From the IMG/VR virus record IMGVR_UViG_3300023235_000008, positions 124,001 through 188,000 of that record: a stretch of 64,000 nt of DNA; one strand, given 5' to 3'. The position numbers and the translations under genes were made by a program. The notes below the pieces were generated by a model. That model was not told where the DNA came from. It saw only the letters and a list, made by a program, of their open reading frames with translations, and searched no databases. Below are positions 38,901 to 63,613 of this stretch, one piece after another (within the stretch, counting starts at the first letter, position 1; every line of letters starts with the position of its first letter).

Positions 38901-41900
38901 TTTCTGGGAACCAGAATATAGACGCACTAGTTTTAATACCATCTCCGGCTTCAGTCTGAACAACTTCGTTTGATGATATAACGTCTTGCAGATTGTAAGC
39001 ATATATTTCACTACTGCCAGAAGCTCCGATATAAATCCATTTTTCGTCATTGCTAATAGCAACTGACTGACCGAACTTATCACCAGATGTTATGTTACTC
39101 GGACGCAATACCTGATTGATACTGAAAACGTTTCCAGTGCCTTTCTTATAGATAACCGCCATGCCTGTTTCAGAACTGGACAATGGCGCACCAACAACAA
39201 TATATTGCTCATCGCCAACATCCACACTTGTTCCAAAGCCATTAATACCAGTGACATCACTTGGATCAAATAATGCATTTTCAGTGAGGTCGTCGGTCGC
39301 TGTCTTAACGCAGTTTATTGCTTTACCTGTGCCGCTATTCGGAAGTCCTGCTACCGCCCATAGATTTTTTTCAGACGATGCAAAGCTTGTGCCGAGATTG
39401 TCATTACCAGATACGCCACCGTATGTAATATTATTACTGAAATCCCACGGAGATTGCTTCTCTAAGACTTGCCATTTACCATCGGCGTCATTTTCAAGCC
39501 ACACTTTTTCTTTAGTCTGCCATCCGTATATTGGATTAAATGATGCGATATCTTTCGGCTCATCATATTTAATAGATTCAAGCGTGAACAATAGTCCATC
39601 AATATTTTCTAAGTCTATTCCGCTTGCATCTACCGTAACAACAAATTCCACATTCGATACAATACTGTCTACACGATAGAATCCATCTACCGAAGAAGTA
39701 TTACGCATTACAACAAAATCATTCGTTGTTAAGTTGTGTGATTTTGATGTTGTTACTTTAATCTGGTTATCCAGAATATCGATCACATTAGTAACCCTAT
39801 TAGCTGTTTCGGAAACACGATAAACATCCCATACACCAGCGGTATTTCGGGCGGTCCATATCGTATATCCAGAACCGACAAACTCCGCATTCAAATCAGC
39901 AACATTGGCGATATCGAAAATGGTTACATCAATGTCTGAAAGACGAGGGAATCCAGCATACGTTATATCTTTCTTAGTATCAGTGCTGCCTGAACGGGTC
40001 GTAAACATATCCTTCGAATATTCATTAGGGGTTTTGTATAAGTCGTCTTCAATATAACTAATGTGCTGCGGGCGTGTATCACCATTGTCTAAAAATTCAA
40101 TAAGTTCTGGGTTAGAAACAAACTCATTCTCGTTAAGTTCAATTTCAATAACTTGGTTGGCATCAATCGCACCATATTCACCAACACGAAATCCCCATTC
40201 TTCGAAGAAATTAATATCGGAATCTTGGTTGTCAAGCTGGGCACGAATTAGTTTATCGATAGATGACGCCGTTCCTTTTTGTTTAATCATTCCCTGATAA
40301 AACTTAACCTGTGAAACATCATCGAGTTCTAGATTTTCAAGATAGTCTCGTTTTTGGTATCCGATAAGACCCTTACCGTATCTATCAAAGATTCCTTCGT
40401 TGTTAACGGAATCCATATTATAAAAATCACCAAAAATAGATGCAGCCGTATCAAGGTTAGGTCTTAACCCAGTCTTTATATTATCAGCAATGCGCCAAAA
40501 CTCTTGTTCAAATGTCTGTCTAGCATCTTGTGCCTTGATAGCAACCCACGTTTTCTTACGGAAGATTGCGAAATCGCCTCGCTTATAATCAACGCCCGGT
40601 GACCACGTTTTAGTAACAGGTTGATTGAAAATATATCCCGGTGCCTGAAATGATCCATCCCAGTTACTCGTCTTTGTACCGATAAGCTTTAAACGGAATT
40701 GACGTGAACCCAACTCTGGAAGATAGATAATGTCATTGAATACTGTGCGATTATTGAAAACAATCGTGTGTTCATATTGGACAGGATTAACTTCAAGTAA
40801 GTAAATAGGTCCAGCCGTATCGGTTGCTTGAACTGTAAATAAGTTATCAATACGCGATACTTTAAGTTGGGTGAATCGAATAGGCTTCAAGTTTTGATTC
40901 AATACTTTATACTGAAGTCCATCGCCGGCAAGATCATCAGGAACTGTTCCGAATAAATTAAACGTCACTTTATCGGATACGGGGTTAAGCGTAATAGTTG
41001 CACCGTTTTCCCAACCCTGCGATTGCCAGAAAAGGTATTCTTTTGCAGACAAAATCCAGTCTTTGGATAATGCACCATTCGTTTCTTCTAGTTGTTCATT
41101 AAATACAAACCCACGTAATTCTAAATATCGCTGATACGATACAAAGAAATCAACTACCTGCTGTGTGTTAGTAAATTCTGTGTTGTACGGTACACGAATT
41201 ACTTCATTGCGGAAATCGTTATAAACGATGGCTCGCACACCGCCGGTATTAATCTGATAGTTATTATCGGTAATGCTACTCGGAATAATATCAAAGTATG
41301 GATTCTCGATATCGTAGCCACGAACTGCCCAACCGTTATTTGTTTTTTCAATGATAACACCGCTCAATGATACCCTCGCTATCGGGGCAGATTTTGTCAG
41401 TTCAATATCGAAGTCATCGTCTGGCACAAATATGCCTTTGTTTGTTGAAGTCGGCGAAACCTGTTCAGCCAGAACTTTCAAGAAACGCTTGTCAGTATAT
41501 CCACCCACTCGATAAACAAGCTGAAGTTCAAGTGCACGAATAACTTTAATAATGTTATCTAACGAAACGTTTTTATGTCTTGCCCAATCTGATACAAACT
41601 GCGAAATACCATTCACTCGATTGACAGTTCCATTAGTTTCTGTTCCGTGAAGAACGATATCTGAACTAGTAATGCGCTTCAATGTATGACGATCAACAAT
41701 CTGATCAAGCGATTTATCACGAACAATATTACCAGAATCGAAACGGGTGGCTGCAAATTTACTTGGTCGTGTCAATGCAGATAGTTTCATTATCGCATAT
41801 GGATACTCACTTGATCTTCTCCAAGCCGCTTCGGCTGGACCAACATCGCCAAATACAAAGCTTTCCTCGACATAGGTGGTATTGTATGCACCTACGACTG

Positions 41901-44900
41901 ATTGTAACGGATCGGCAAGATTACCAGTGGCATCTACGGGTATAAAGCTTTTCAAATCAGGTCGGACGAAATCTGCTAAAATAGTAAAGTCGGTGCCCGC
42001 AACATCTTGATATAGCTTTCCATCACGTAGGTCTTCCCACATAACTTCGTTGCCCTTTGTGTAAGGCGCAATACCGTAACGATCATCCCACCAAGTAGGC
42101 TTTTCGCTTTGCCCCAGCATTTCCCAAGGGTGACTATGTGGGCGGTCAGTATCGTAGAAATAACGATAAATTCCACGCCAGTGACCCGGTAACAAATCAC
42201 CATCTATTTTATCTTGAAAATTAGACCAATTCCACGTAAACTTGTCAGCAACGTCAAATCCAATTTGTGCCGAGTAATCAACCTTATTGACAATCGCCCA
42301 ATTTAAGAAACCAAGACTTAAAATACTATCAACTTCTTCACGAGTATAATCACTGTCACGGAATTTACCGGGAAGAAGTTCATTGACATCGAATACATCT
42401 GTGGTATAAGTTGTCTTAATATTGTTATAAATTCTTTTTTCAAATTCAAGTATAATGTCGTCGCGACTATCGTTGAATGCCACAAAAATACTACCATCGT
42501 GTCCTTGGATAACTGTCTTCGGCGTGCGGTATGTATCGTCAGTGTAAATCTCTGGTCTAAACTTCGGATATAACCCCATTTTTGTAGGCGTAGGCGGAAT
42601 AAAACTTCCGTCCGTATTTGAATAATCAATAATCTCAATGATATCGTCTACTGCCAACACAAATCCATCATCAAAGGTAATATTTGCGCCAACGGTATCA
42701 AATACAAAATCCGTGCCAACATAAATCTGAACACCGTTATGATATACTAATACAGAGCGATTGCTGATATCATTGATATCAAAGAATAGTCCGTAGTCAT
42801 ATGTTCTAATATCTGGGTTCTCGATTGCATATATAGCAGTCGCGGCATCTTCACCATATCCAAGCATATCACTATAAAAGAACGGGAATGTTTCCGATTT
42901 GCCAATTTTTAGTTCATTGATAACTGCATCCAGTGCGGCGGGGATATCATCAAAATTTAAATCCATCGTGCTAATAGCATCATATAATTTTTGTTTATAC
43001 TTACTATATTCACGGCGGGAATAATCAATTGATCTGATTATACTCGAATCATGAACGTGGGTATTGTTATCCTTATTAATACTGCCGTTGTTTAGCAGAA
43101 ATGCGCCTAAATGTGCGCCCGCACTATGCTGAAGAATATTACCAGCATAACTTTTTAAATTAGTAACATCACGCAGATTACTATTACCCGGCGAATTACC
43201 AAAGAATGTAGTTGAGTTATTACTAGCGATGGTAATGTGATTGCGGATTTGTCCAAGTGTAAGCGTAGTAAACTCGGTGTTTGTTGCGTTATTTTCCAAG
43301 TTTGATGGAATTTCATAGTAACCGAAATCAGGCTGAACATCAGAATATGCACGAATAACAATGTAATCATCCACGTCAGCCGGTGCAGCTAATACAACAA
43401 AAAAGTTCCCATCCTGCTCCAACGTAGTATATTCAGGTTCAATAAAGTTAGTGACATTTTGTGTAGTATCACGTTTCAGTAGTTTGCTATTTTTATATAC
43501 GAATAGATTAACCACATCGTTCTCATTCTTAGGAATGGTGGGTGATTGAAATACCTGTGTCTCATCGGCAGTTACGAGGTATTCCTGAATAGAGAACTGG
43601 CGGGTATTTCTATTAACTTTCGTCCAGTCGTTCTTGATTTCATCCGTATCTCTGTCAATAATTTTATGAACAAAGCCATCATTAATCTTGGTTGTTTCAA
43701 TAATATTGCTTGGTGAATAAGTGAACGCATCACGAACGTAGTTGTTTTCAAAAATTATATCGCCGACATTTTCGAAGTTTTTGTAGCTTAATCCAAATCC
43801 AAGAACAGGGTCTTCCACTGCGGCTGGCTGTTGCTGATAGCTAAACAATCTAGTTCCAGTGAAACCTGTTCCAAAATATACGCTTTCATCACCAAAACTA
43901 TTTCCAGACGTATCGAAAATATCGAAATATGGGGTTTGATTAATATTGGTTTTTTGCTGGGATTCTAACCACACATCATCATTATAATAAAACACAATAC
44001 CCTGTCTTGTGGCACCATTGGAAATAAGAATAACATCGTCGTTGGTGGCATCACCAACTTCTGTCAAATGAAGTTGAAATTCATCGTCTGAATCAGTATC
44101 AATAAAGGATACCTCATATATTTTACTACGCACCAATGGATCACGGTCAGCACCAAAGATAACGGTTGTTCCACCTAATAACGGAATACCATCCACGAAG
44201 TAACCTGACTGACCTTCAACATTTGACAATGCATCAATCTGCGTTTCGTCAAATACATTAACAACTCGATTAAAAATCTTACCATAGTTGAATAGTTGTA
44301 AATCTGGTTCAAATTCAATGATAGGACGATTAGCTCGTTTGTCTTGATCGACAATAAAATTAAAGTCATTATATGCAGCTGTTTTTTCAATCACATCAAT
44401 GTGGAACCAACGGTTTGAACGTGACCAAGCATTGCGGTCAACGGATGAACGATTTATTGTGAAATAATCAACCTCTAGTGGCGCATTAGCAGAGCCAGCC
44501 CAACCAGCACTGTCAAACGTTTCTGTATCAAATCCTTCTTCTTCGGTGGTCGTAAACGGCTCTGGAACAACCAAATCATCCACTGATACTAATCGAATGC
44601 CTCCTGTTTGACCGACTCCTTCTACGTAATATTCGTTACCCGCATATGAAACTGGGGTGACATCACTATTAAAATCAATCTTCATTCCATTCGTAAGTTC
44701 TACAGCATTTGGTGAAATATACTCGTTGCGTCCAATGATATCTTCGTCCACATTAATCGCAGGGACTTCATCCTGCTCAACCACATCAATAATACCGAAA
44801 CGCAACGGGTCAATGCCATCAGCATAAAAGAAGCGGGTTAATGGCGCAGTGATTACGGGAACAAGTTCAAGTTGCTGAACTGCATTTTTCCAAAGTTCTT

Positions 44901-46059
44901 TATTGCCAAATTCGCTACCTTTAAGAATAAAAATCTTTTCATCCTGCGGTATATTCAGAACACGAACAACAGTCATAATATCATTGGCATCAATGCTTAT
45001 TCTGTAAACGTCGTGTCGGTCTTCTAGGGAAATCGTATTTGTAGGATCAAAGGTACTTCCGTTAGCATCAAAGCCAACACCCTGCGTATCAAATAGTCCG
45101 CCCGCTTCCCAAATCTCTTCGTTTTGGTTTTCGTCAACATTATAAAAAACGATAGTAGCATTTTCAATTTCACGCTGATCAGTAATACCGTCAATACCAT
45201 CAGGATTATTAGCAATGAACGTAGTGAATACTTGGTTATGTATTTCTGTATAAGAAAAGCGAGTTGCAAAATCAACGTCATCGGTTTTTGTCATTCCAAT
45301 CCATTTATTTTGCGCATTTGCTGCTGGTACATTAAACGTTACTACGCCCACATCCTCGCCATTATTTTCAATACCTAGAATGTCACGGGTCGAAATGTTA
45401 TCTTGGATGTCTTTAAGACCATCTAATCCCGGCTCAGTCTGAATATAAAATGGAAACCCAAGTTGATCTACTGTGAACGTATATGAACCACCACGTGCAA
45501 TCTTAATAGTAGGGTTATTAACCGAGTTGCGATCATTTATAAAATACGAAGGTTCAATATCCACACGAGTTATGTCAAAATTTTCTTCGGAATCAATAAC
45601 GGAACTGAATACAGGAATAGAATCGGGTCCATTTGGTAACCAATAATATTGTGAAAAGTTAACAAACTTATCAAAATCAAAGAATGAAGACCAAGAATAA
45701 TATTCATTTTCAAATAGACGGTCGTGATTATTAGTATCACCGCCTTCTGCCTCAATGGCGTTGACCATATCAACATAATTTGTCAAAAACTCAACACGAT
45801 CACCACTCGTACCAGTTTCTGGAATTTCTTTAAATACTACACCCGGCTCAAGTTGATAATTCTGACGAGTATCAGATACTTCATTTACGTATTGGTCACC
45901 CGCAGAGAAAGACGGTGCAAATTTTCTACCGACAAAGGCATTAATCTTTTCTTGAACACTAGGTGTTACAAGTTGGTCAATGGTTGCATTAAGAAATTTC
46001 TCGTTTTTTTCAGTTCTGAAAATCTCAGGTAATAATCCGATGGTTTTACGCAAAGCCAT
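32956..46059 (-). CDS. Giant (4367 aa) baseplate wedge/tail-associated structural protein
   Basis: RQNYQLEP, DKFVNFSQYYW, FG-x-SV propeller-like repeats, GDG-x-T-x-x-F repeats, KPYRT, LRRGTQGT; follows the gp6-like gene. Confidence 0.8.
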   Translation of the reverse strand: MALRKTIGLLPEIFRTEKNEKFLNATIDQLVTPSVQEKINAFVGRKFAPSFSAGDQYVNEVSDTRQNYQLEPGVVFKEIPETGTSGDRVEFLTNYVDMVNAIEAEGGDTNNHDRLFENEYYSWSSFFDFDKFVNFSQYYWLPNGPDSIPVFSSVIDSEENFDITRVDIEPSYFINDRNSVNNPTIKIARGGSYTFTVDQLGFPFYIQTEPGLDGLKDIQDNISTRDILGIENNGEDVGVVTFNVPAANAQNKWIGMTKTDDVDFATRFSYTEIHNQVFTTFIANNPDGIDGITDQREIENATIVFYNVDENQNEEIWEAGGLFDTQGVGFDANGSTFDPTNTISLEDRHDVYRISIDANDIMTVVRVLNIPQDEKIFILKGSEFGNKELWKNAVQQLELVPVITAPLTRFFYADGIDPLRFGIIDVVEQDEVPAINVDEDIIGRNEYISPNAVELTNGMKIDFNSDVTPVSYAGNEYYVEGVGQTGGIRLVSVDDLVVPEPFTTTEEEGFDTETFDSAGWAGSANAPLEVDYFTINRSSVDRNAWSRSNRWFHIDVIEKTAAYNDFNFIVDQDKRANRPIIEFEPDLQLFNYGKIFNRVVNVFDETQIDALSNVEGQSGYFVDGIPLLGGTTVIFGADRDPLVRSKIYEVSFIDTDSDDEFQLHLTEVGDATNDDVILISNGATRQGIVFYYNDDVWLESQQKTNINQTPYFDIFDTSGNSFGDESVYFGTGFTGTRLFSYQQQPAAVEDPVLGFGLSYKNFENVGDIIFENNYVRDAFTYSPSNIIETTKINDGFVHKIIDRDTDEIKNDWTKVNRNTRQFSIQEYLVTADETQVFQSPTIPKNENDVVNLFVYKNSKLLKRDTTQNVTNFIEPEYTTLEQDGNFFVVLAAPADVDDYIVIRAYSDVQPDFGYYEIPSNLENNATNTEFTTLTLGQIRNHITIASNNSTTFFGNSPGNSNLRDVTNLKSYAGNILQHSAGAHLGAFLLNNGSINKDNNTHVHDSSIIRSIDYSRREYSKYKQKLYDAISTMDLNFDDIPAALDAVINELKIGKSETFPFFYSDMLGYGEDAATAIYAIENPDIRTYDYGLFFDINDISNRSVLVYHNGVQIYVGTDFVFDTVGANITFDDGFVLAVDDIIEIIDYSNTDGSFIPPTPTKMGLYPKFRPEIYTDDTYRTPKTVIQGHDGSIFVAFNDSRDDIILEFEKRIYNNIKTTYTTDVFDVNELLPGKFRDSDYTREEVDSILSLGFLNWAIVNKVDYSAQIGFDVADKFTWNWSNFQDKIDGDLLPGHWRGIYRYFYDTDRPHSHPWEMLGQSEKPTWWDDRYGIAPYTKGNEVMWEDLRDGKLYQDVAGTDFTILADFVRPDLKSFIPVDATGNLADPLQSVVGAYNTTYVEESFVFGDVGPAEAAWRRSSEYPYAIMKLSALTRPSKFAATRFDSGNIVRDKSLDQIVDRHTLKRITSSDIVLHGTETNGTVNRVNGISQFVSDWARHKNVSLDNIIKVIRALELQLVYRVGGYTDKRFLKVLAEQVSPTSTNKGIFVPDDDFDIELTKSAPIARVSLSGVIIEKTNNGWAVRGYDIENPYFDIIPSSITDNNYQINTGGVRAIVYNDFRNEVIRVPYNTEFTNTQQVVDFFVSYQRYLELRGFVFNEQLEETNGALSKDWILSAKEYLFWQSQGWENGATITLNPVSDKVTFNLFGTVPDDLAGDGLQYKVLNQNLKPIRFTQLKVSRIDNLFTVQATDTAGPIYLLEVNPVQYEHTIVFNNRTVFNDIIYLPELGSRQFRLKLIGTKTSNWDGSFQAPGYIFNQPVTKTWSPGVDYKRGDFAIFRKKTWVAIKAQDARQTFEQEFWRIADNIKTGLRPNLDTAASIFGDFYNMDSVNNEGIFDRYGKGLIGYQKRDYLENLELDDVSQVKFYQGMIKQKGTASSIDKLIRAQLDNQDSDINFFEEWGFRVGEYGAIDANQVIEIELNENEFVSNPELIEFLDNGDTRPQHISYIEDDLYKTPNEYSKDMFTTRSGSTDTKKDITYAGFPRLSDIDVTIFDIANVADLNAEFVGSGYTIWTARNTAGVWDVYRVSETANRVTNVIDILDNQIKVTTSKSHNLTTNDFVVMRNTSSVDGFYRVDSIVSNVEFVVTVDASGIDLENIDGLLFTLESIKYDEPKDIASFNPIYGWQTKEKVWLENDADGKWQVLEKQSPWDFSNNITYGGVSGNDNLGTSFASSEKNLWAVAGLPNSGTGKAINCVKTATDDLTENALFDPSDVTGINGFGTSVDVGDEQYIVVGAPLSSSETGMAVIYKKGTGNVFSINQVLRPSNITSGDKFGQSVAISNDEKWIYIGASGSSEIYAYNLQDVISSNEVVQTEAGDGIKTSASIFWFPESEDNLQIIDSNGRILVPYVDFTVSGNTVNFTFTLTNSVDYVMRRIPMYRHISTIERNADVEDRAADAMGTNIDTNGDGTIIVTGAPNRRYFGTDSAVLSNAGAAYIFERTKESFIGDGTTDTFTPSGTLPPVNTLSVYIDNEIQTYTVDLTLTSDDSQFGQYTLTGNTVEFRNAPSENVIVKIDVNNFVQVQRLQSTDPTDSDLYGSSVVINSDTTGNWIAIGSPGEDRVTTNTGSVFVYLDRSKKFGTVTGTSSPTISSGDKIRINDIVVTTTGTTLTTLVSDINNAGISGITAADTNGLTIVSESKIENNKLRVMPLTGNTYGTLGIEPYTKIQEISHPRNAENETFGLAIDLNAAGDTLVVGSKIASTINTLRFDVDADDLATTVFDNNSTYFFDRELQSGAVYVYDLLASWNETIDNPSQFGFTQQLQSETIESFDEFGTSVHIRDTKIIVGSPKYDTATLTNSGIFYEYENPTLNKGWVDIRGEDDKIDVSLFNKAFIYSRRNNEIIEYLDWIDPAKGKVSGLAQQELAYTTERDPASYNVNTITTNILNTRSPWGINHVGKLWWDVSTVRYVDYEQGELDYRASQWAAKFPGSSTDVYEWVESNTLPSVYSGDGTPKFADDSSYTERVSFNNNTGIATTKYYFWVKDKTSAPNVGFRKLDSSTVARIIDNPKTYGLKFLSVIKSNSIIAYNLAENIEDNNTVLHINYDVIKNSNVLHSEYQLVAEGDSTSVIADKIYNKFVDSLAATNSNGDSVPQRGLSVAERYGVLYRPRQTMFVDRTTALELFVTFCNEVFGKYQIANQFDLSRIESADPIPGERSGAWAESVDTFAELSYLNPAIYANGYKVLVLGDENYDNLWSIYEKQSDNTWILTRIQAYDTNNYWQKTTWYADGFNENTVVTFAVETEQDLNAISDTLSAGELVKIKSNDLGVESIVQFNEDGSFEEVVVEDGTIEFLPSLYDNTVEVIGFDNSAFDNSLFDKLPTTEIRQIVEAVKNDIFVEDIRVEWNRLWFTMVEYLLTEQPYADWLIKTSFIKVVQKLRGLDQYPSYQRDNQDYISDYIAEAKPYRTNVREYILEYTKDDPWNGDVTDFDVHSYFDSDLGYYRKPSGEKASDFALWEQGLNVPWGDNYGYSVGSTILLNSGIGYTIPPVLTVTGGGGSGAIIEAKTNGSVITQLTVINEGNGYTTTPTVEIDGVGTGLEIYLQLTNGKVREFDSILKFDRIAYSSDIVEWEANTAYTAAQIISYLGEAYEVVADYTSSATFDASNLTVYADGDFTSAADRIAAYYTPTEGMIGNDITQLQIGTDYPGVRVYGPDFNANPGFDVGAFDVEEFDAFEIDENGIAVISGASSIDSIIRSTYSDAALGVAPEDIDIVGGKYIDVYNSHSPEEFVPGIMFDTLDLKVFTLPGQDQEFDGNAARIYTEFHVSDGSTASFGYKGSSSVEDVDNIFVWTALGGVQYQDIDFTVDYTNGIVTFVSVPVSNDTIYIYSFSNTGENPVAEKSFTADGITDTFTVPIDPDVVEQGYVLVDGVRSLNPNIVVNGNFIDVVLSSTPTAGQHVHIVLYDVDPDVRQAFSEVTEQLETSDGSTRVITLDNTSLYAKPFEANMIVEVNGSRLRPANAVYYSGDGNTITFNVPTSAQETQALVQNSDIIVGIYDQSVDQYRNLVAGQDYTTNAYDGSSIRSITFIGDDSAARTPTTQDTVVIGITTDAEYTVSSDGTTLTIDAGVTLAADDIIRIVQFANHDPQRIQTNVFKGVGTEQRFTLDRPVTNTDYLWVTVDGTKLHSAVDYSVLGSEIIIADSTTLTASSIIVVSGFSEKISQPSTGFRIFNDMLGNTEYYRITQDNTTTLVQEFTLEDDVIYVENATSLAPPDTDSGVPGFLMIAGERITYWERDTDANTVSRLRRGTQGTGAKSVHALGSNVFDVSGQQIPGNTHTQVWYTSGDGTAADGQGLQNSSTLQAQYLVAKRTLLAE

Positions 46060-53033: not shown

Positions 53034-53656
53034 TGCCGGATTTTAAATATAATATAAGCCGTGTGTGGTCCACCGCCGAAGCAAAGGCGAAGCCGTGGTC
53101 AACCGCAGGGTATATTGCGGTAATTATTGTTAGTTTTTTTGCGTACGTATTATTTGTTAATGTATGGTTATTTACACTCAGTGATATGATGTGGTACGGC
53201 GATGCATCTTTTGGTCCGCATCCTATGGACGAAAGGTTTCAGGTGTTCACTGCGATTTTGTCTACGGTGTCATTCGTGGTGTTCTGTGCAACATGGATGT
53301 TTACAACAGATAGAGCAAAATTCATCGTTAATCGATTTTCGGCATTTGCAGTCCATTACGGAAAACGGGCAATGAAAGATATCAAAAAGGAATGCACGGT
53401 GGGTTATGCTAATAACACATTTACATCTCATCATAATCCCCTTTTAGAAAAAATGGCAGGTATTACAAACATCAACTGCCACCTATTACTTACTCATAAT
53501 AATACATCACACATGACTATTTTTAAGAAAGATGCGGTTGACGATTATATGATATACGGATTTCCAATCGATGGTAAGCTAGAGTTTTGTGTAGAAGGTG
53601 AAAAAAATATGTTCTTTTTACAACTTTCCAGTGATATTTTCATTGACAATGGCTAA
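53030..53656 (+). CDS. Two-TM membrane protein with C-terminal EKNMFFLQL tag variant
   Basis: Two hydrophobic segments. Confidence 0.7.
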   Translation: MMPDFKYNISRVWSTAEAKAKPWSTAGYIAVIIVSFFAYVLFVNVWLFTLSDMMWYGDASFGPHPMDERFQVFTAILSTVSFVVFCATWMFTTDRAKFIVNRFSAFAVHYGKRAMKDIKKECTVGYANNTFTSHHNPLLEKMAGITNINCHLLLTHNNTSHMTIFKKDAVDDYMIYGFPIDGKLEFCVEGEKNMFFLQLSSDIFIDNG

Positions 53657-53677
53657 TATTATGATATTATATAAATA
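53643..53677 (+). promoter_or_regulatory. Overlapping sigma70-type and late promoters
   Basis: TTGACA-N16-TATTAT and TATAAATA (53670-53677). Confidence 0.7.
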
Positions 53678-56337: not shown

Positions 56338-57543
56338 ATGAAATATAACTTTCCACATATCAATCACATCAATGATGTCCTTCCACATATCGAAGGTCGT
56401 AAAGAGTTCGTTGTGGCAGAACGAGATGGATTTACGGTTATCAACTATGTCGTAATGACGCCTGACCTGTTCCCACCAGTTGTTACTGAAGCAGATGCAA
56501 TACTGCGTGAATGTCGTGGCATCACTTTCTGCAATGAAACGGGCAAAGTCGTAGCTCGAAAGTTTCACAAGTTCTTTAACGTTGGCGAACGCATGGAAAC
56601 CGAGTTCCGTAAACTGGATTTAAGTCAGCCACACGTTATTCTTGAAAAGCTTGATGGCTCAATGATTACGCCGTATCTGCGTGATGGTAAAGTTGAATGG
56701 CATACCAAAATGGGCAAGACTGATGTTGCCGATATGGTTATTCCTTTCGTTGAAGCAAATCCACAGTATGCTGAACTGGCAGATTTCATATTGCGTAATA
56801 ATAACGCTACGCCAATATTTGAGTTCTGTTCACGCAAGAATCGTGTTGTGATTGACCATCCAGAAGACCGTATGGTATTACTGGCGGTGCGTGATAACGT
56901 AACTGGAAAGTATTGGGAATACGAGCTTGGTCTTGAAATCCCAGCTGTAGAATTTAATGTCGAGTTGGTCGGACAGCATAAAGCAACGTTTGACAAGGAT
57001 TTCCTTGAATATGTTCGTGGCTTGGTCGGAACTGAAGGGTTCGTTGTGCGCTTTGATGATGGGCATATGTTGAAAATCAAAGCAGAGGATTACTTACAGT
57101 TACATCGTGCCAAAGAAGGTATCTCTCATGAGAAGAATGTTTGGTCAATGGTCCTCAATGAGTCAGTAGATGATTTGAAGTCATTCTTAGATGATGATGA
57201 CCGTATGCGTGTTGAAGATTTTGAAGTGAAGTTATGGCGTGAAGTTGATTACGCTGTTCAGCACTTGGAAATGTTCTTCGGATTTGCAATGGATGATTTG
57301 AACAAGCGTGACCTATCAATGTTTGAAGATGCTGACCGTGAACGTAAGAAGATGTTTGCCATGGAATACGCTAATAACTACCGTAAAGAGTTCAAAGGTG
57401 TCTTGTTCAGCATGTTTGATGGTGGCGATGTGCGTGACTTGGTTATACAGTTCATTAAGAGCAACGTATCAACTGGAACTAAGTTGGATGGAATACGTCC
57501 GTTGTTTAACAACATTCAGTTTGATGAAAGGGAGTATGAATAA
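56338..57543 (+). CDS. RNA ligase, T4 Rnl1 family
   Basis: ECRG, KFFNVGE, motif I EKLDGS, FEF, EGFVV, LKIK. Confidence 0.9.
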   Translation: MKYNFPHINHINDVLPHIEGRKEFVVAERDGFTVINYVVMTPDLFPPVVTEADAILRECRGITFCNETGKVVARKFHKFFNVGERMETEFRKLDLSQPHVILEKLDGSMITPYLRDGKVEWHTKMGKTDVADMVIPFVEANPQYAELADFILRNNNATPIFEFCSRKNRVVIDHPEDRMVLLAVRDNVTGKYWEYELGLEIPAVEFNVELVGQHKATFDKDFLEYVRGLVGTEGFVVRFDDGHMLKIKAEDYLQLHRAKEGISHEKNVWSMVLNESVDDLKSFLDDDDRMRVEDFEVKLWREVDYAVQHLEMFFGFAMDDLNKRDLSMFEDADRERKKMFAMEYANNYRKEFKGVLFSMFDGGDVRDLVIQFIKSNVSTGTKLDGIRPLFNNIQFDEREYE

Positions 57544-57749
57544 TGGCAATACTAATATGTAATGATTGTCGCTTTCATTTTGAAGATAAATGGTCCACAA
57601 ATCATAAGTGTTGTATTGAACCACAAACGACAGACAGGTTTCCTAGTATGACAGCGTGTCATAGGTTTGAACCAGAGTTTTGTTCAGACCCAGAACTGAA
57701 AAAACAATACGACAAGTTTATGTTTGGCATACACTTGCAAAAGGAGTAG
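57543..57749 (+). CDS. Cys-rich microprotein with C-terminal DKFMFGIHL
   Basis: CNDC…CC…C. Confidence 0.6.
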   Translation: MAILICNDCRFHFEDKWSTNHKCCIEPQTTDRFPSMTACHRFEPEFCSDPELKKQYDKFMFGIHLQKE

Positions 57750-57755
57750 AGACAG

Positions 57756-58055
57756 ATGTTTAAAATAATAGAAAAAGCCGAATCATATGGAAAACGGCTA
57801 GATGAGAAGATAGAAGCAAATAAGTTAACTAGCGAAAGTCAATCCCATTTCTGTCTTTACTATATCCTAAACCAGATTTCCTTTGAAATGTGTTTTAGCG
57901 TAGGAACGATGCTAGGATTCATATTCGCAGCGATTGTGCTAATCGGTTTGATTAGCTTCTTCCCATGGTTGCTTATCGTTATTGCGGTAGCACTAGGTTG
58001 GGCGATTAAACAACACTGTAATAAAAACTGGAAGAAACACAATGCCAAACAATGA
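57756..58055 (+). CDS. Membrane protein
   Basis: AAGGAG SD; hydrophobic C-terminal half. Confidence 0.65.
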   Translation: MFKIIEKAESYGKRLDEKIEANKLTSESQSHFCLYYILNQISFEMCFSVGTMLGFIFAAIVLIGLISFFPWLLIVIAVALGWAIKQHCNKNWKKHNAKQ

Positions 58056-58230
58056 AGATCGAGTTCCTACTACTGCACCCTATGGCGGGATAACTGACGG
58101 AAGTGTCTACTGTACTCGATGTGGCGAAGAGAGAACAGGGTGCAGTATGTGTGCTGGTGAACTCAGGAGTTTGAAAGCAGGGCGATCAACCGCCTACAGA
58201 TTTTGTATAGGAGATGAAAATGCTAAATAA
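58042..58230 (+). CDS. Zinc-finger-like microprotein
   Basis: CTRC…CSMC. Confidence 0.5.
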   Translation: MPNNEDRVPTTAPYGGITDGSVYCTRCGEERTGCSMCAGELRSLKAGRSTAYRFCIGDENAK

Positions 58231-58654
58231 ATTGAAAGATGATGCGTTACAAGCGAGGAAAGATCGTGATCTTTTTGCTAGTTCACTCAACACGCTTTTG
58301 TCTGAAGTAAAGATGAGAGCAAAGAACGATGGCAACCGTGAGCCTAACGACGAAGATGTGTATAAGATAGCACAGACTACAATGGCTTCGTTGCTCGGTA
58401 ATCGTGACCTATTGGACACTGCAGGACGTGACACGACTGAAGTAGAACAAGAGATGAAAGTGATTTCTGCTTACGTTCCTACTGTTATGCCGAAGGAAGA
58501 AGTCGAAGGTAAAGTTCAACTTGCTATGCATGAAATCAAACCAGAAGGCATGCAAGATATGGGCAAAGTGATGTCATGGCTTAAAGAAAAGTATGGAGCT
58601 CGTATTGATATGAAACTGGCCTCTCAGCTTTTCCGGGAGCGATTGAATGGATAA
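58214..58654 (+). CDS. GatB/YqeY domain protein
   Basis: LLSEVK, AYVP, QDMGKVMSWLK…DMKLASQ. Confidence 0.85.
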   Translation: MKMLNKLKDDALQARKDRDLFASSLNTLLSEVKMRAKNDGNREPNDEDVYKIAQTTMASLLGNRDLLDTAGRDTTEVEQEMKVISAYVPTVMPKEEVEGKVQLAMHEIKPEGMQDMGKVMSWLKEKYGARIDMKLASQLFRERLNG

Positions 58655-58916
58655 CATTGCCCAATCAGAGGATGAACTGATCGAAGACTTTGCTGGAATC
58701 ATCGGCAAAATCATTGTCGCCCGAAAAGCATGTGATGATTATCTGGAATCTGGAACAGCATCAACCTTCCGCGGTGATGTTGTGGTTGAAACCGACGCAA
58801 AGATTGCGGCACTATCACGTGAAGCCGATGTCATTATTGCAATGATTGATGATATTGCAGAAAACAAAGGCTTTGTGAACCGTATGAAAAAAATGTATAA
58901 GGAGTTAATGGAATGA
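58647..58916 (+). CDS. Hypothetical protein
   Basis: Coupled ORF. Confidence 0.6.
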   Translation: MDNIAQSEDELIEDFAGIIGKIIVARKACDDYLESGTASTFRGDVVVETDAKIAALSREADVIIAMIDDIAENKGFVNRMKKMYKELME

Positions 58917-59167
58917 CGAATGAAACGTGGAAAGAAGCTATTACCGACACATTAGGCGATCTTGGCGATACAATCGTGTTGGCTACATTGGTTGAAGCTT
59001 ACGTTGCAAATGAGCGTGACATTTACAATCTCGAAAGCAACGAAGAACTCGAAGATTATCAAACAGAGGATTTAGAATATAATAAGAAGCTTCGTGAATC
59101 TGTAAAGTTTGTAATCAAATATTATTCAACAGATTCTGAACGTGTAAGATTGGGATTGGATTTTTAA
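58913..59167 (+). CDS. Hypothetical protein
   Basis: AAGGAG SD, ATGA overlap. Confidence 0.65.
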   Translation: MTNETWKEAITDTLGDLGDTIVLATLVEAYVANERDIYNLESNEELEDYQTEDLEYNKKLRESVKFVIKYYSTDSERVRLGLDF

Positions 59168-59626
59168 ATGCCTATGTTATATATGCTAATCGGTGTTCCA
59201 GCAAGCGGCAAGTCAACTTGGCTTGAACAAAATGCTGATAGTGGTGTAGTTTTAAGCACGGACGCACATATTGACAATGTTGCCGCACAACAGGGCAAGT
59301 CATATAACGATGTGTTTGGCGATGCGATTAAAAAAGCCACTGTGAAAATGAATAACGATTTAAAGCAAGCGGTTAATCGTGGCGAAGATATCCATTGGGA
59401 TCAAACCAATCTTACGGTTAAATCTCGTCGTGGCAAGCTACAGAAGGTGCCTGATACGTATGAAAAGATTGCGGTAGTATTTCCAACACCCGATGCCGAC
59501 GAACATCAGCGGCGACTGGATTCACGCCCCGGCAAAACTATTCCACCACATATTTTGAAGAATATGATGGCAACTTTCCAAATGCCTACCACCGATGAAG
59601 GATTTGATAGGATAGTAGTAATATGA
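59168..59626 (+). CDS. Polynucleotide-kinase-like P-loop kinase
   Basis: GVPASGKST, LSTD, DQTN, R…R lid, EGFD. Confidence 0.85.
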   Translation: MPMLYMLIGVPASGKSTWLEQNADSGVVLSTDAHIDNVAAQQGKSYNDVFGDAIKKATVKMNNDLKQAVNRGEDIHWDQTNLTVKSRRGKLQKVPDTYEKIAVVFPTPDADEHQRRLDSRPGKTIPPHILKNMMATFQMPTTDEGFDRIVVI

Positions 59627-60754: not shown

Positions 60755-60792
60755 TTGACTTATTAATATATATGTGATAGAATGTATAAATA
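60755..60792 (+). promoter_or_regulatory. Tandem sigma70 and late promoters
   Basis: TTGACT-N17-TAGAAT (extended TG), then TATAAATA at 60785-60792. Confidence 0.8.
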
Positions 60793-60839
60793 GAATAACA
60801 GCACAGAATACTTCAGTGCACAATATAGAAAGAGATACA

Positions 60840-61034
60840 ATGACTTCAACACTTTTAACACAACCAATAACACTCAGCTTATCAGATTATCGACCGATTA
60901 TCCGTGCGTGTATTGCCGTGCTTAAAGGTTGGGGTAGTATTCAATCAGAACATACAGCGCTACCCGTATATACACGATTTAATATGGATAAAAGCGCAAC
61001 GAGGGTTCAAGGAGATGGTGGAAGTTCATTCTAA
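60840..61034 (+). CDS. Putative leader peptide (64 aa) of the tRNA array
   Basis: Lies between promoters and a terminator; GAAAGAGA before the ATG; contains a complement of the terminator 5' arm. Confidence 0.55.
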   Translation: MTSTLLTQPITLSLSDYRPIIRACIAVLKGWGSIQSEHTALPVYTRFNMDKSATRVQGDGGSSF

Positions 61035-61063
61035 CACAAAATCTTAAAAACGAAAGTTTTACG

Positions 61064-61096
61064 AACCCTCTAAACCGCAAGTTTAGGGGGTTTTTT
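61064..61096 (+). terminator. Rho-independent terminator (candidate attenuator)
   Basis: AACCCTCTAAAC-CGCAA-GTTTAGGGGGTT followed by a T tract. Confidence 0.85.
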
Positions 61097-61115
61097 AATG
61101 AGCGTAAAAAAGATG

Positions 61116-61144
61116 TTGACAAAAAGATATAGGTAGAGTAATCT
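61116..61144 (+). promoter_or_regulatory. Possible sigma70 promoter
   Basis: TTGACA-N17-TAATCT. Confidence 0.5.
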
Positions 61145-61209
61145 ACTGAAGATAAGCAGTCAAGACCGGCGAACAACAAAGGTTGTTCAGATATATGGTA
61201 AGGCTGGCA

Positions 61210-61282
61210 CAGTAAAGAATAGCCCGTAAGGATACTAACTTTACTGCAGTAAAGAATAGCCCGTAAGGATACTAACTTTACT
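61210..61282. repeat. 36-bp exact tandem duplication of a hairpin
   Basis: cagtaaagaatagcccgtaaggatactaactttact at 61210-61245 and 61247-61282. Confidence 0.95.
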
Positions 61283-61341
61283 AAGCAGAGGTTCGAAGCG
61301 TTTACGTGGATTGCCAATCTAAAATGTTATGTGTGTTTTGT

Positions 61342-61416
61342 CAGGGTGTAGCTCAGTCTGGCCAGAGTGTCGGTCTTGGAGTCCGAAAGTCGCAGGTTCG
61401 AGTCCTGCCACCCTGA
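61342..61416 (+). tRNA. tRNA-Pro(TGG)
   Basis: Cloverleaf CAGGGTG/CACCCTG, TTCGAGT T-loop; no encoded CCA. Confidence 0.9.
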
Positions 61417-61435
61417 CAGAATACATATAGAGAGA

Positions 61436-61658
61436 ATATGGGCGGGTACGCAACACCGTAAGTCCCAGAGATTACGTGAGTTAACGGTCCACGCTGACAA
61501 TCGGGTTCACAGCATGAAATAGGGCAATCGGAATCAACCGTTATCGTCTTTATCTGTTATATTATAATAAATGTGAAGACCAATGGAAATCGGTATCACA
61601 GATAATATTGCAATAAACTTAATAGTTTCCCAATCGAAGGTGACGATAATATCCATAT
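61436..61658 (+). ncRNA. Unknown structured RNA, copy 1
   Basis: Closing stem ATATGGG/TCCATAT; 18-nt motif shared with copy 2. Confidence 0.45.
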
Positions 61659-61667
61659 AGATATTTA

Positions 61668-61833
61668 TACTAGGGGCAGCTTAAAGCGTAAGTCCCAGAG
61701 ATTAGTTACCCCGGTGGTCCTACGGTACGTTGTTTAACCGCTTCGTTATCATGGTCTAGCGTGGTCGCTAGGGTGAAACAGGCTGGGTAGTAAAATAGTG
61801 TGGTAACTATTTGAACCCCGTCCCTAGTAGCCA
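61668..61833 (+). ncRNA. Unknown structured RNA, copy 2, with GCCA 3' end
   Basis: Closing stem TACTAGGGG/TCCCTAGTA followed by GCCA. Confidence 0.55.
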
Positions 61834-61841
61834 AAAGTTTA

Positions 61842-61974
61842 GGATTGGTAGCTGAGAGGCACAGCGGCACCTTAATGGGTGTGTCGAAACATAAGCACGT
61901 AACAAACTCGCCGAGGACGCTCGAACGATAAGGTTACGCCTGTTACGTTGGTTCAAATCCAACCCAATCCACCA
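61842..61974 (+). ncRNA. tRNA-like RNA with ~64-nt variable region (Leu-TAA-like loop)
   Basis: GGATTGG/CCAATCC-ACCA, D arm, GTTGG-TTCAAAT-CCAAC T arm. Confidence 0.7.
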
Positions 61975-62996: not shown

Positions 62997-63613
62997 ATGA
63001 ACACATGTAAAATATGCAATACACAGTTTATCAATAAACCTAAAACAACAGGTCTATACTGTTCAATCTCCTGTGGAAATCGCAGTAGAGGAAATAAACT
63101 AAGAGAACAAAATAAGACAATCTATGTTCCGTCATCTTGCAAACGCTGCGGTGATGACATTCCATATGAAAAAAGACGCAACACATTTTGCTCTAGTAAA
63201 TGTGCTGCTACAGGAAATACAAACAGAAGGTATCTTCATACATCATATGCAAAGAATGCAACGAGGCATACAAACCAAGACATTCGGTTTCATACTTTTG
63301 TAGCAAGGCATGTGAGATTGAGAATAGGCGAGGGGCTACTGAAAAGAAAATTAAAAAAGGGGCAGTCAGAGGTCGCCCGACATTAAAAAGATATCTTCTA
63401 CGAAAGAATGGACACTGCTGTGAAATGTGCAACGGGACGGAATGGATGGGCGAACCTATTCCACTCGAACTTGACCATATTAATGGCGATGCGGGTAACA
63501 ATATGCCCGACAACTTGCGATTATTATGCCCTAACTGCCATACTATAACACCATACTCAAATGGAAAAAATAGAGGCAATGGTAGAAAATCTCGTGGTGT
63601 CCCGCTAAACTAA
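62997..63613 (+). pseudogene. HNH homing-endonuclease-like gene split by a frameshift near 63220-63240
   Basis: CxxC/FCSxxC repeats in frame 1 continue in frame 2 into LELDHINGD…NLRLLCPNCH. Confidence 0.75.

Follow-up and report, generated by a model that had tools for sequence, protein, structure and literature searches.

A candidate translation-sensing attenuator upstream of a tRNA gene array in a T4-like phage

Several leader elements couple translation of a short upstream reading frame to transcription of the genes that follow. In mycobacteria, the whiB7 5' leader is a uORF-mediated attenuator with a Rho-independent terminator (bioRxiv 10.1101/2023.06.02.543512). Efficient translation of the uORF leads to the terminator, whereas inefficient translation leads to the antiterminator and read-through. 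The whiB7 uORF varies in length and sequence between species while the architecture is kept, and the amino-acid shortages that are sensed depend on the residues it contains; the M. smegmatis uORF has every amino acid except Cys. The classical amino-acid operon leaders of Enterobacteria (trp, his, phe, leu, thr, ilv) comprise a promoter, a short translated ORF of 14-32 codons with a run of regulatory codons, and mutually exclusive antiterminator and terminator structures, the ribosome at the end of the ORF favoring the terminator. The toiL uORF of E. coli topAI-yjhQ (eLife 2025, PMC12121999), like other antibiotic-sensing leader ORFs, is a multipurpose uORF at which ribosome stalling at different positions remodels the downstream RNA structure, giving a general translation-stress sensor. 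In the pyrBI/pyrE-type coupling attenuators, a longer leader ORF or a whole upstream gene is translated, and the position of the ribosome relative to RNA polymerase sets termination at a downstream intrinsic terminator. Phage tRNAs are now seen as countermeasures to tRNA-cleaving host defences (eLife 2023, PMC10264068; Nature 2024, PMC11464382), but literature searches for a leader or attenuator upstream of phage tRNA arrays found no described example.

We analyzed a locus of about 350 nt directly upstream of the tRNA array of an uncultured T4-like phage. Positions refer to the window, which is the whole stretch of 64,000 nucleotides that was analyzed. A preliminary description, made from the sequence alone, had proposed that an ORF containing all 20 amino acids, an 8-bp antiterminator pairing and an intrinsic terminator together gate the tRNA array as a general tRNA-damage sensor. 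The individual features it had listed were all recovered, and its observation is confirmed. The locus contains the following features:

60755..60783 (+), sigma-70-type early promoter, TTGACT-17-TAGAAT with a TG extension, preceded by an A-rich tract
60785..60792 (+), T4-type late promoter motif TATAAATA, directly after the -10 element
60801..60819 (+), predicted 5'-UTR hairpin (GCAC...GUGC)
60840..61034 (+), leader ORF of 64 codons (ATG to TAA), with a weak-to-average Shine-Dalgarno, GAGA, at about 60832-60835
61001..61008 (+), antiterminator 5' strand (P1-5'), GAGGGUUC, in codons 54-57
61012..61045 (+), hairpin P2, which contains the stop codon (61032-61034); its 5' strand is the conserved SD-like AAGGAGA
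61047..61060 (+), hairpin P3, AAAAC-GAAA-GUUUU (GNRA tetraloop)
61063..61070 (+), antiterminator 3' strand (P1-3'), which is also the base of the terminator's 5' arm
61063..61096 (+), intrinsic terminator with a 13-bp stem (61063-61093; 10-bp G+C-rich core 61066-61090), a 5-nt loop and a U6 tract (61091-61096)
61116..61144 (+), second sigma-70-type promoter, TTGACA-17-TAATCT, which could bypass the switch
61150..61341 (+), conserved structured RNA of unknown family, the first product downstream of the switch
61342..61417 (+), tRNA-Pro(UGG), first gene of an array of at least 16 tRNA-like genes

The ORF reaches all 20 amino acids at codon 48 and uses 39 distinct codons, with ATA and CTA once each, CGA twice and AGG once. 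An 86-aa, GTG-started version of the ORF was considered and dropped, since its start lies inside the promoter. The tandem early and late promoter design also occurs at 53643-53677. The terminator core, CCCUCUAAAC/GUUUAGGGGG, has a hairpin energy of -12.9 kcal/mol, and the full stem -17.4 kcal/mol. A simple terminator scan did not list it, but RNAfold and our own scan did find it. The segment GAGGGTTC at 61001-61008 is the exact reverse complement of GAACCCTC at 61063-61070, with a duplex energy of -12.5 kcal/mol.

To test whether this pairing exceeds chance, we calculated the stability that the nascent RNA gains by engaging the terminator's 5' arm, which amounted to -11.0 kcal/mol. Dinucleotide shuffles gave -2.4 +/- 2.1 kcal/mol, with a fraction of 0.0025 being as strong, and codon-order shuffles reached the observed value in 0 of 400 cases. 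Natural 195-nt segments of the same genome reached it at a fraction of 0.0034. The value was the most extreme among 24 clean natural terminators in the window and related phage loci. The composition of the ORF is weaker evidence on its own. All 20 amino acids occur in 9.5% of the 64-residue windows of this phage's real genes and within 48 residues in about 2%, while at least 39 distinct codons occur in 4.8%.

Relatives of the module were sought by several routes. DNA similarity searches against GenBank phages, in near and distant modes, gave no match, and a tblastn of the ORF gave only noise. The ORF had no PHROG or Pfam hit. A word-indexed protein search with the single sequence returned only itself; its cluster members and 9 population copies are 100% identical over 651 nt and give no information on variation. 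A set of 77 loci carrying the upstream 103-aa gene had tRNAs nearby, but other cargo instead of the leader ORF, and the 124-aa neighbor had no useful relatives. A full HMMER scan gave one true relative and three repetitive false hits, which were rejected by inspection. A metagenome scan with the peptide alignment added only contigs of the lineage termed B below, while a DNA pattern scan with the switch motif found the lineage termed C. Pattern scans with the AGAGGGTTSAAGGAGA motif gave 12 chance hits, the motif of the unknown RNA, strict and relaxed, gave only the window's lineage and C plus chance hits, and a scan of genome contigs gave 3 chance hits inside coding regions of MAGs. No homologues of the ORF product were found outside the three lineages among 1.8 billion representatives.

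These searches yielded two further lineages in uncultured T4-like phages: B (about 20 metagenome contigs) and C (one IMG/VR contig); the window represents lineage A. In all three lineages, the order is early plus late promoter, 5' hairpin, an ORF of 55-74 codons, the antiterminator strand GAGGGTT(C/G) within the last 8-11 codons of the ORF, a hairpin holding the stop codon, the GAAA-tetraloop hairpin, the intrinsic terminator, a second promoter, the structured RNA, and then tRNA-Pro and the array. The -35 and -10 elements of the early promoter are conserved in B and C (TTGACT-17-TATAAT). The late motif is identical in C and reads GATAAATA in B. In the 5'-UTR hairpin, an A/A mismatch in the stem becomes a C-G pair in B. 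Counterparts of the second promoter are TTGACA-17-TAGTTT in B and TTAACA-16-TATACT in C, at the same position. The structured RNA shares sequence blocks among A, B and C, one of its hairpins changes in a compensatory way in C, and it has no Rfam match.

Conservation was concentrated on the switch elements, which are 87-100% identical. The 16-nt block GAGGGTTCAAGGAGAT, comprising the antiterminator strand and the P2 5' strand, is 100% identical in C and 88% in B, and the region from P3 through the terminator is 87-92% identical. In contrast, the ORF body is 58-69% and the rest of P2 is 52-58% identical. The codons AGG GTT CAA GGA GAT are identical at every third position in A and C, including the rare Arg codon AGG (RSCU 0.30), although the flanking peptide differs. 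A P2 hairpin is predicted at the same place in B and C, with a different 3' strand and length. The P3 sequence ACGAAAGTTTT is invariant in A, B and C, with one G-U change at the stem base in B. The terminator is conserved in B and C, with two one-sided changes that keep pairing (U-G to U-A, A-U to G-U) and a variable loop. The distance from the antiterminator strand to the stop codon is 23, 21 and 17 nt in A, B and C, and that from the stop codon to the terminator arm is 28, 33 and 27 nt. The stop codon is inside P2 in each case, next to the antiterminator strand. This geometry is conserved and is compatible with ribosome position deciding the fold.

The sequence comparisons indicate that the ORF is translated. 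ORF indels between and within lineages are all multiples of 3 (3, 12, 21, 21 and 27 nt), whereas UTR indels are 1, 2 or 5 nt. The dN/dS values are 0.41-0.44 between A and B and 0.1-0.3 within B. The coding score lies above every out-of-frame window, codon usage is typical, and the Shine-Dalgarno strength is average for this phage. A stop-free frame of this length arose in only 1-2.6% of shuffles.

Poor peptide conservation with retained codon diversity had been named beforehand as the expected signature, and this is what was found, every lineage encoding all 20 amino acids with near-maximal codon diversity. The C peptide shares only SIQxxHTAL and the C-terminal RVQGD with that of the window, yet it has all 20 amino acids in 55 residues and 39 distinct codons. 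All 20 are likewise present in A (64 aa) and in every B variant checked (67-74 aa, 45-47 distinct codons); the null rates are 10%, 11-18% and 5% for A, B and C. Cys and His in all three lineages, and Trp in C, sit at non-homologous positions. Against real genes, the distinct-codon counts gave p = 0.047 (A), <= 0.0002 (B) and 0.0019 (C). Against a random-sequence null, however, the codon diversity of A is ordinary (p = 0.51), and that of B and C is only moderately high (0.006-0.04). All 20 amino acids are reached at codons 48, 54 and 44 in A, B and C, while the last antiterminator-permissive A-site codon is about 50, 57 and 43; in C, Asp first appears one codon beyond the nominal permissive zone. 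The case shows that a compositional property, all 20 amino acids in a short leader, can be conserved while the peptide sequence is not.

Folding calculations gave the antiterminator as the minimum-energy fold of the nascent RNA. Forcing it in the full leader costs only 0.0-1.5 kcal/mol in A, 2.3 in C and 5.7 in B. The fraction of shuffles with a pairing as strong was 0.003-0.02 in B and 0 of 300 in C, compared with the values given above for A; the pairing is much stronger than chance in each lineage. RNAalifold yielded P1 and P3 for the nascent alignment, and P3 and the terminator for the full alignment. The antiterminator nevertheless covers only the basal 8 of the 13 stem pairs, and at equilibrium the terminator is favored (pair probability 0.96 against 0.04). 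Covariation of the 61001/61063 pairing is absent: 7 pairs are identical in all three lineages and the 8th is broken in B. The pairing rests on conservation and thermodynamics, from only three lineages. One natural variant (L103) carries a 21-nt in-frame deletion that weakens P1 to 5 bp.

With the above results in hand, we favor a ribosome-mediated transcription attenuator as the explanation, with a probability of roughly 0.55. In this view, transcripts from the promoters at 60755-60792 carry the translated leader ORF, and the nascent RNA can fold into a three-way junction whose closing helix P1 sequesters the base of the terminator's 5' arm. A ribosome translating the last 10 or so codons, or sitting on the stop codon inside P2, would occupy P2 and abut the P1 5' strand, so that the junction cannot close, the terminator forms and transcription stops at the U-tract. 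If the leading ribosome is missing, or stalls anywhere in about the first 50 codons, the junction would form first, and RNA polymerase would read through into the structured RNA and the tRNA array. Since that zone holds all 20 amino acids, shortage of any charged tRNA could be reported. No consistent upstream anti-antiterminator or pause hairpin was found: in the terminator-state folds, the partners of the antiterminator strand differ in A, B and C. An untranslated transcript would therefore read through by default, which could make the element leaky. The result would be a homeostatic input to phage tRNA supply, added to a constitutive promoter at 61116, and possibly the only route for late-promoter transcripts. 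The analysis itself establishes the two alternative folds, their near-equal energy, their conservation and the translation of the ORF, whereas the effect of the ribosome, including the steric argument, the response of read-through and its direction, and the physiological signal are inferred.

The interpretation in the preliminary description is thus supported in part. The attenuation layout holds and is conserved in two lineages it could not have seen, but the bypass promoter it had mentioned as a caveat is conserved in all three lineages, so the tRNAs are not gated solely by this element, and tRNA damage as the signal is pure inference. A further reading, which we regard as doubtful, is that the leader ORF is under selection to contain every amino acid, with near-maximal codon diversity, inside the stretch where a stalled ribosome still permits the antiterminator. 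The phage would then monitor the decoding capacity of the infected cell as a whole, and loss of any tRNA species, for example through host anticodon nucleases, would raise transcription of its own tRNA array and of the adjacent RNA, forming a virus-encoded feedback loop for the translation apparatus.

The locus might instead be an ordinary small phage gene with its own promoters and terminator, encoding a fast-evolving protein such as a small host-interaction factor, while the array is expressed from the promoter at 61116 and the complementarity serves something else, such as 3'-end stability, RNA processing or a fixed leakiness of the terminator, and does not report translation. The dN/dS values below 1 and the peptide blocks conserved between A and B (MTSTLL, LSDY, KGWGS, RFNMDKSA) suggest that the peptide may have a function of its own. 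The typical codon usage, the positive in-frame coding score, the conserved second promoter and the lack of covariation in P1 are also compatible with this view, and population-level in-frame indels in the middle of the ORF resemble diversifying surface loops. However, the C peptide is almost unrelated, while the 16 nt carrying the antiterminator strand are identical, including at synonymous sites. AlphaFold on the 7-sequence alignment predicted no confident fold (pLDDT 59, pTM 0.28), and homologues are confined to the three lineages in the search described above. If the ORF is translated, ribosomes must pass over P1 and P2, and translation-dependence of the fold is then hard to avoid. We consider this alternative unlikely, though it is the strongest of those examined.

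A ribosome-independent switch, in which the junction of P1, P2 and P3 binds a phage or host protein, a tRNA or a small molecule that stabilizes or melts the antiterminator and the overlap with the ORF is incidental, seems less likely still. P3 (ACGAAAGUUUU) and the AAGGAGA segment are invariant in sequence and not only in structure, as expected for a binding site, and the junction architecture is kept while the P2 3' strand and length vary. On the other hand, no Rfam family reaches threshold, no candidate ligand or protein can be named, and a factor-binding element would require neither the stop codon inside P2 nor a frame kept through every indel. The P1-P2-P3 region was also considered as a degenerate tRNA, but it has no ARAGORN or Rfam tRNA signal. 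Coincidence is very improbable. The feature was selected from a 64-kb window after it had been seen, all 20 amino acids occur in about 10% of 64-residue windows, and the codon diversity of A equals that of random sequence. Yet about 0.3% of shuffled or natural upstream sequences match the pairing in A, the pairing recurs in two lineages while the surrounding sequence has diverged, and the composition prediction held in lineages found only afterwards.

Compared with the described systems, the sensing principle is not new, since the whiB7 uORF attenuator already works as a many-amino-acid translation-stress sensor. The phage element shares with it a uORF of variable sequence within a conserved terminator/antiterminator architecture. 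It differs in that whiB7 is cellular, has an actinobacterial host and controls a transcription factor rather than tRNA or other RNA genes; its uORF is strongly Ala-enriched (25-40%), whereas the phage leader has near-uniform composition and all 20 residues. There is no sequence relationship, and the phage element is followed by a second promoter. The three best Rfam hits on 61010-61099 are amino-acid operon leaders, but they score far below the gathering thresholds (trp/his/phe-type models RF00513, RF00514 and RF01859; His_leader 24 bits against 49, Trp_leader 16.7 against 41, Phe_leader 17.5 against 55). The phage leader has no run of regulatory codons, is longer (55-74 codons), and lacks a conserved 1:2 protector or pause hairpin that restores termination when there is no translation. 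Its stop codon lies downstream of the antiterminator 5' strand, inside the junction, rather than upstream of it. A T-box riboswitch is not supported, with no hit even at E <= 10. The toiL uORF acts through ribosome-binding-site occlusion and Rho-dependent termination, not an intrinsic terminator, and is a cellular gene whose target is a toxin-antitoxin pair. In the pyrBI/pyrE type, the ribosome reaches the terminator hairpin itself (the leader ORF ends within about 15 nt of it, or inside it), so tight coupling suppresses termination; here, the stop codon is 27-33 nt before the hairpin in all lineages, the ribosome could act only through the antiterminator, and the predicted sign is the opposite. 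The regulation of phage tRNA arrays is largely unknown. A leader ORF and antiterminator that report translation failure and open the way into the array would be the first described sensing input for phage tRNA expression, and would extend the whiB7-type logic of a uORF as a general translation-stress sensor from bacteria to viruses.

The window belongs to a 230-kb uncultured viral contig, IMGVR_UViG_3300023235_000008. The phage uses sigma-70-type TTGACA/TATAAT promoters and T4-type TATAAATA late promoters. We first checked the elements listed in the preliminary description, and each of them was found to be correct:

60755-60783, promoter TTGACT-17-TAGAAT
60785-60792, late promoter motif TATAAATA
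60840-61034, ORF of 64 codons, with all 20 amino acids by codon 48 and 39 distinct codons, including ATA, CTA, CGA (twice) and AGG
61001-61008 and 61063-61070, exact 8-nt complementarity
61047-61060, hairpin AAAAC-GAAA-GUUUU
61063-61093, terminator, followed by U6, at -17.4 kcal/mol
61116-61144, promoter TTGACA-17-TAATCT

The observation is therefore confirmed. A simple terminator scan missed the terminator, but it was detected by RNA folding and by a scan of our own. The tandem promoter design has a second example at 53643-53677, where TTGACA-16-TATTAT is overlapped at its final T by TATAAATA in front of a gene. This suggests a recurrent early-plus-late promoter type in this phage.

To test whether the complementarity exceeds chance, we calculated the stability gained when the RNA engages the 5' arm of the terminator. 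The predicted 8-bp helix (P1) closes a three-way junction around two hairpins, P2 (61012-61045), which contains the stop codon, and P3 (61047-61060). In RNA transcribed only as far as the terminator loop, this junction is the minimum-energy fold. In the full leader, forcing it costs only 0.4-1.5 kcal/mol, and 0.0 in the local context. The stability gained was -11.0 kcal/mol, whereas dinucleotide shuffles of the ORF yielded -2.4 +/- 2.1 (fraction as strong: 0.0025). Codon-order shuffles reached this value in 0 of 400 cases, and natural 195-nt segments of the same genome gave a fraction of 0.0034. The value was the most extreme among 24 clean terminators in the window and related loci. At equilibrium the terminator still wins, with a pair probability of 0.96; any antitermination must therefore be kinetic.

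The in-frame codon score of the ORF (0.10) lies above every out-of-frame window, but in the lowest 5% of genuine in-frame windows. Its codon usage is typical and not enriched for rare codons, and its Shine-Dalgarno sequence is average for this phage. Searches against Pfam and PHROG returned no match, and structure prediction yielded no confident fold (pLDDT 59, one helix).

We then searched for relatives. Copies from the same population were identical over 651 nt. The conserved 103-aa upstream gene occurs in 77 viral loci, often next to tRNAs, but none of these loci carries the leader. A full HMMER scan of 1.8 billion representatives found one true homologue, P0005, at 53% identity. Starting from P0005, a profile search and cluster look-ups recovered lineage B, which comprises about 20 contigs from ENA and JGI metagenomes, some of them from the same samples as the window's phage population. 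A DNA pattern taken from P3 plus the terminator arm found lineage C, IMGVR_UViG_3300025818_000030. Further pattern scans of viral and genome collections gave only chance hits. Only three lineages (the window's own, A, together with B and C) exist in the collections searched.

The three lineages share the same order of parts:

A-rich tract
TTGACT-17-TA(G/T)AAT promoter
(T/G)ATAAATA late motif
5'-UTR hairpin
ORF of 55-74 codons
GAGGGTT(C/G)AAGGAGA
hairpin containing the stop codon
ACGAAAGTTTT hairpin
GAACCCTCT(A/G)AAC, variable loop, GTTTAG(G/A)GGG, T6
second sigma-70-type promoter
conserved unknown RNA
tRNA-Pro and further tRNAs

Conservation was uneven along this order.

Table. Block identities between lineages.
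Antiterminator strand plus P2 5' strand (16 nt): 88-100%
P3 through terminator: 87-92%
ORF body: 58-69%
Rest of P2: 52-58%

Synonymous divergence between A and B is 0.67, so this conservation is not simply recent ancestry. In B and C, the same three-way junction is the nascent minimum-energy fold, with a strength of -7.7 to -8.7 in B (shuffle fraction 0.003-0.02) and -11.2 in C (0 of 300). RNAalifold returned P1 and P3 on the nascent alignment, and P3 and the terminator on the full alignment. The terminator has two one-sided changes that keep pairing. P1 shows no compensatory change; seven pairs are invariant, and the eighth is lost in B. Within the lineage B population (contigs L090 and L092-L108), all polymorphism in the roughly 730-nt module falls in the leader ORF and its promoter/5' UTR region, and it consists of substitutions plus in-frame indels of 12, 21 and 21 nt. 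The 400 nt downstream (3' UTR, terminator, second promoter, unknown RNA and tRNA-Pro) are identical in every contig.

The RNA between the second promoter and tRNA-Pro (window 61150-61341; also L090:965-1122 and, on the minus strand, locus L114:5410-5251) is a conserved structured RNA of unknown family without an Rfam match. The blocks GTCAAGACCGG, CAGATATATGG, GAGGTTCGAAGCG and CGTGGATTGCCAAT are shared by all three lineages. One hairpin, GAACAAC/GTTGTTC in A and B, is replaced by GTGTAG/CTACAC in C. A 37-nt tandem duplication (about 61209-61283) is present only in the window.

Several lines of evidence bear on the role of ribosomes. Every indel inside the ORF is a multiple of three: 3, 12, 27 and 3 nt between A and B, and 12, 21 and 21 nt within B. 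Indels in the untranslated flanks are 1, 2 and 5 nt. The dN/dS values are 0.41-0.44 between A and B and 0.1-0.3 within B. The stop codon is always inside P2, 23, 21 or 17 nt after the antiterminator strand and 28, 33 or 27 nt before the terminator arm. A perfect Shine-Dalgarno-like AAGGAGA (61010-61016, and the same position in B and C) is conserved inside the ORF, 12-17 nt before the stop codon; it forms the 5' strand of P2 and might also hold or pause the ribosome near the end of the ORF. A ribosome protects roughly 12 nt on the 5' side and 15 nt on the 3' side of the first P-site nucleotide. While this footprint is established and the conserved spacing was found by our comparison, we infer the next step, namely that a terminating ribosome fills P2 and abuts P1 but cannot reach the terminator. 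Its only plausible effect would therefore be to prevent the junction and so favor termination, and a ribosome stalled earlier, or absent, would leave the junction free to form. This regulatory behavior is likewise inferred from sequence and predicted structure alone.

The preliminary description had proposed, as a test, that relatives would show poor peptide conservation but retained codon diversity, and the lineages found afterwards show this. The C peptide shares only SIQxxHTAL and RVQGD with that of A, yet it has all 20 amino acids in 55 residues and 39 distinct codons. All B variants checked have all 20 amino acids and 45-47 distinct codons in 67-74. In windows of real phage genes, all 20 amino acids occur at rates of 5% at 55 aa, 10-11% at 64 aa and 11-18% at 67-74 aa, and they are reached by residue 44, 48 or 54 in 1.4%, 2.5% and 4.9%, respectively. 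Cys and His in all three lineages, and Trp in C, sit at non-homologous positions. All 20 are reached at codons 48, 54 and 44, and the last A-site codon that still leaves the antiterminator strand free is about 50, 57 and 43; in C, only Asp falls one codon outside. The distinct-codon counts are extreme against real genes (p = 0.047 for A, <= 0.0002 for B and 0.0019 for C), but only moderately high against stop-free random sequence (0.51 for A, 0.006-0.04 for B and 0.043 for C). The leaders are therefore at least as diverse as random sequence, which fits selection for diversity, but also fits a peptide that is free of normal protein composition.

With the above results in hand, we weighed the possible explanations. 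The interpretation in the preliminary description, a leader-peptide attenuator sensing all amino acids and gating the tRNA array, is partly supported. The attenuator reading is the best-supported explanation (probability about 0.55). Pan-amino-acid sensing is plausible, but it remains tentative. An ordinary small gene with a coincidentally or otherwise structured 3' end is less likely than the attenuator, although it remains a serious rival. Several points limit the attenuator reading: the peptide is not evolving neutrally, there is no conserved protector hairpin, and variant L103 of lineage B has lost part of P1 through an in-frame 21-nt deletion. The second promoter is conserved in all lineages, so the array has an independent input. 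We infer that the attenuator may matter mainly for transcripts from the late promoter, because no plus-strand late motif follows the terminator.

The genomic context was also inspected. An RNA-repair-like neighborhood lies just upstream (56338-59626), with a T4-type RNA ligase 1 (56338-57543), a YqeY-like protein and an AAA_33/PNK-like P-loop kinase (59168-59626); a Metallophos phosphoesterase lies further upstream. This is consistent with a tRNA-damage theme but is not proof of it. Phage tRNAs as a counter to tRNA-targeting defense are documented in the literature. Within the array, the motif CGTAAGTCCCAGAGATTA occurs twice (61459-61476 and 61688-61705) inside roughly 200-nt non-tRNA spacers, and lineage C has a similar GTGTAAGTCGCAGAGATTTT just after its tRNA-Pro; these may be further small RNAs or processing signals. 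A tRNA-model match (40.8 bits) stretches over 130 nt at 61842-61971, so this is a tRNA gene with an insert of about 55 nt, which ARAGORN does not call. HNH endonuclease reading frames sit inside the array at 62997-63613. They are split into two pieces in the window and in locus L002, but are called as one 205-aa gene in the population copy L003, which looks like a frameshift polymorphism. On the minus strand (61534-61669), a 40-aa hydrophobic ORF (61656-61534) lies directly behind a TATAAATA motif (61669-61662); it is therefore antisense to the array and points toward the terminator. Elsewhere in the window, a single 4367-aa reading frame occupies 32956-46059 on the minus strand.

Finally, we compared the element with known systems. 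It is not a member of the trp, his or phe leader families: their Rfam scores are sub-threshold, although these three are the top hits, and the element has no codon runs and no 1:2 hairpin. It is not a T-box. It is not a pyrBI-type attenuator, because the stop codon is too far from the hairpin. E. coli toiL is another multipurpose sensory uORF, but it is Rho-dependent. Our literature search found no paper describing an attenuator before a phage tRNA array; the proposed mechanism is of a kind already known. In mechanism, the closest system is the mycobacterial whiB7 leader, in which efficient uORF translation gives a Rho-independent terminator and translation stress gives an antiterminator. The whiB7 uORF sequence varies between species, and its amino-acid content decides which starvations are sensed; the M. 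smegmatis uORF lacks only Cys.
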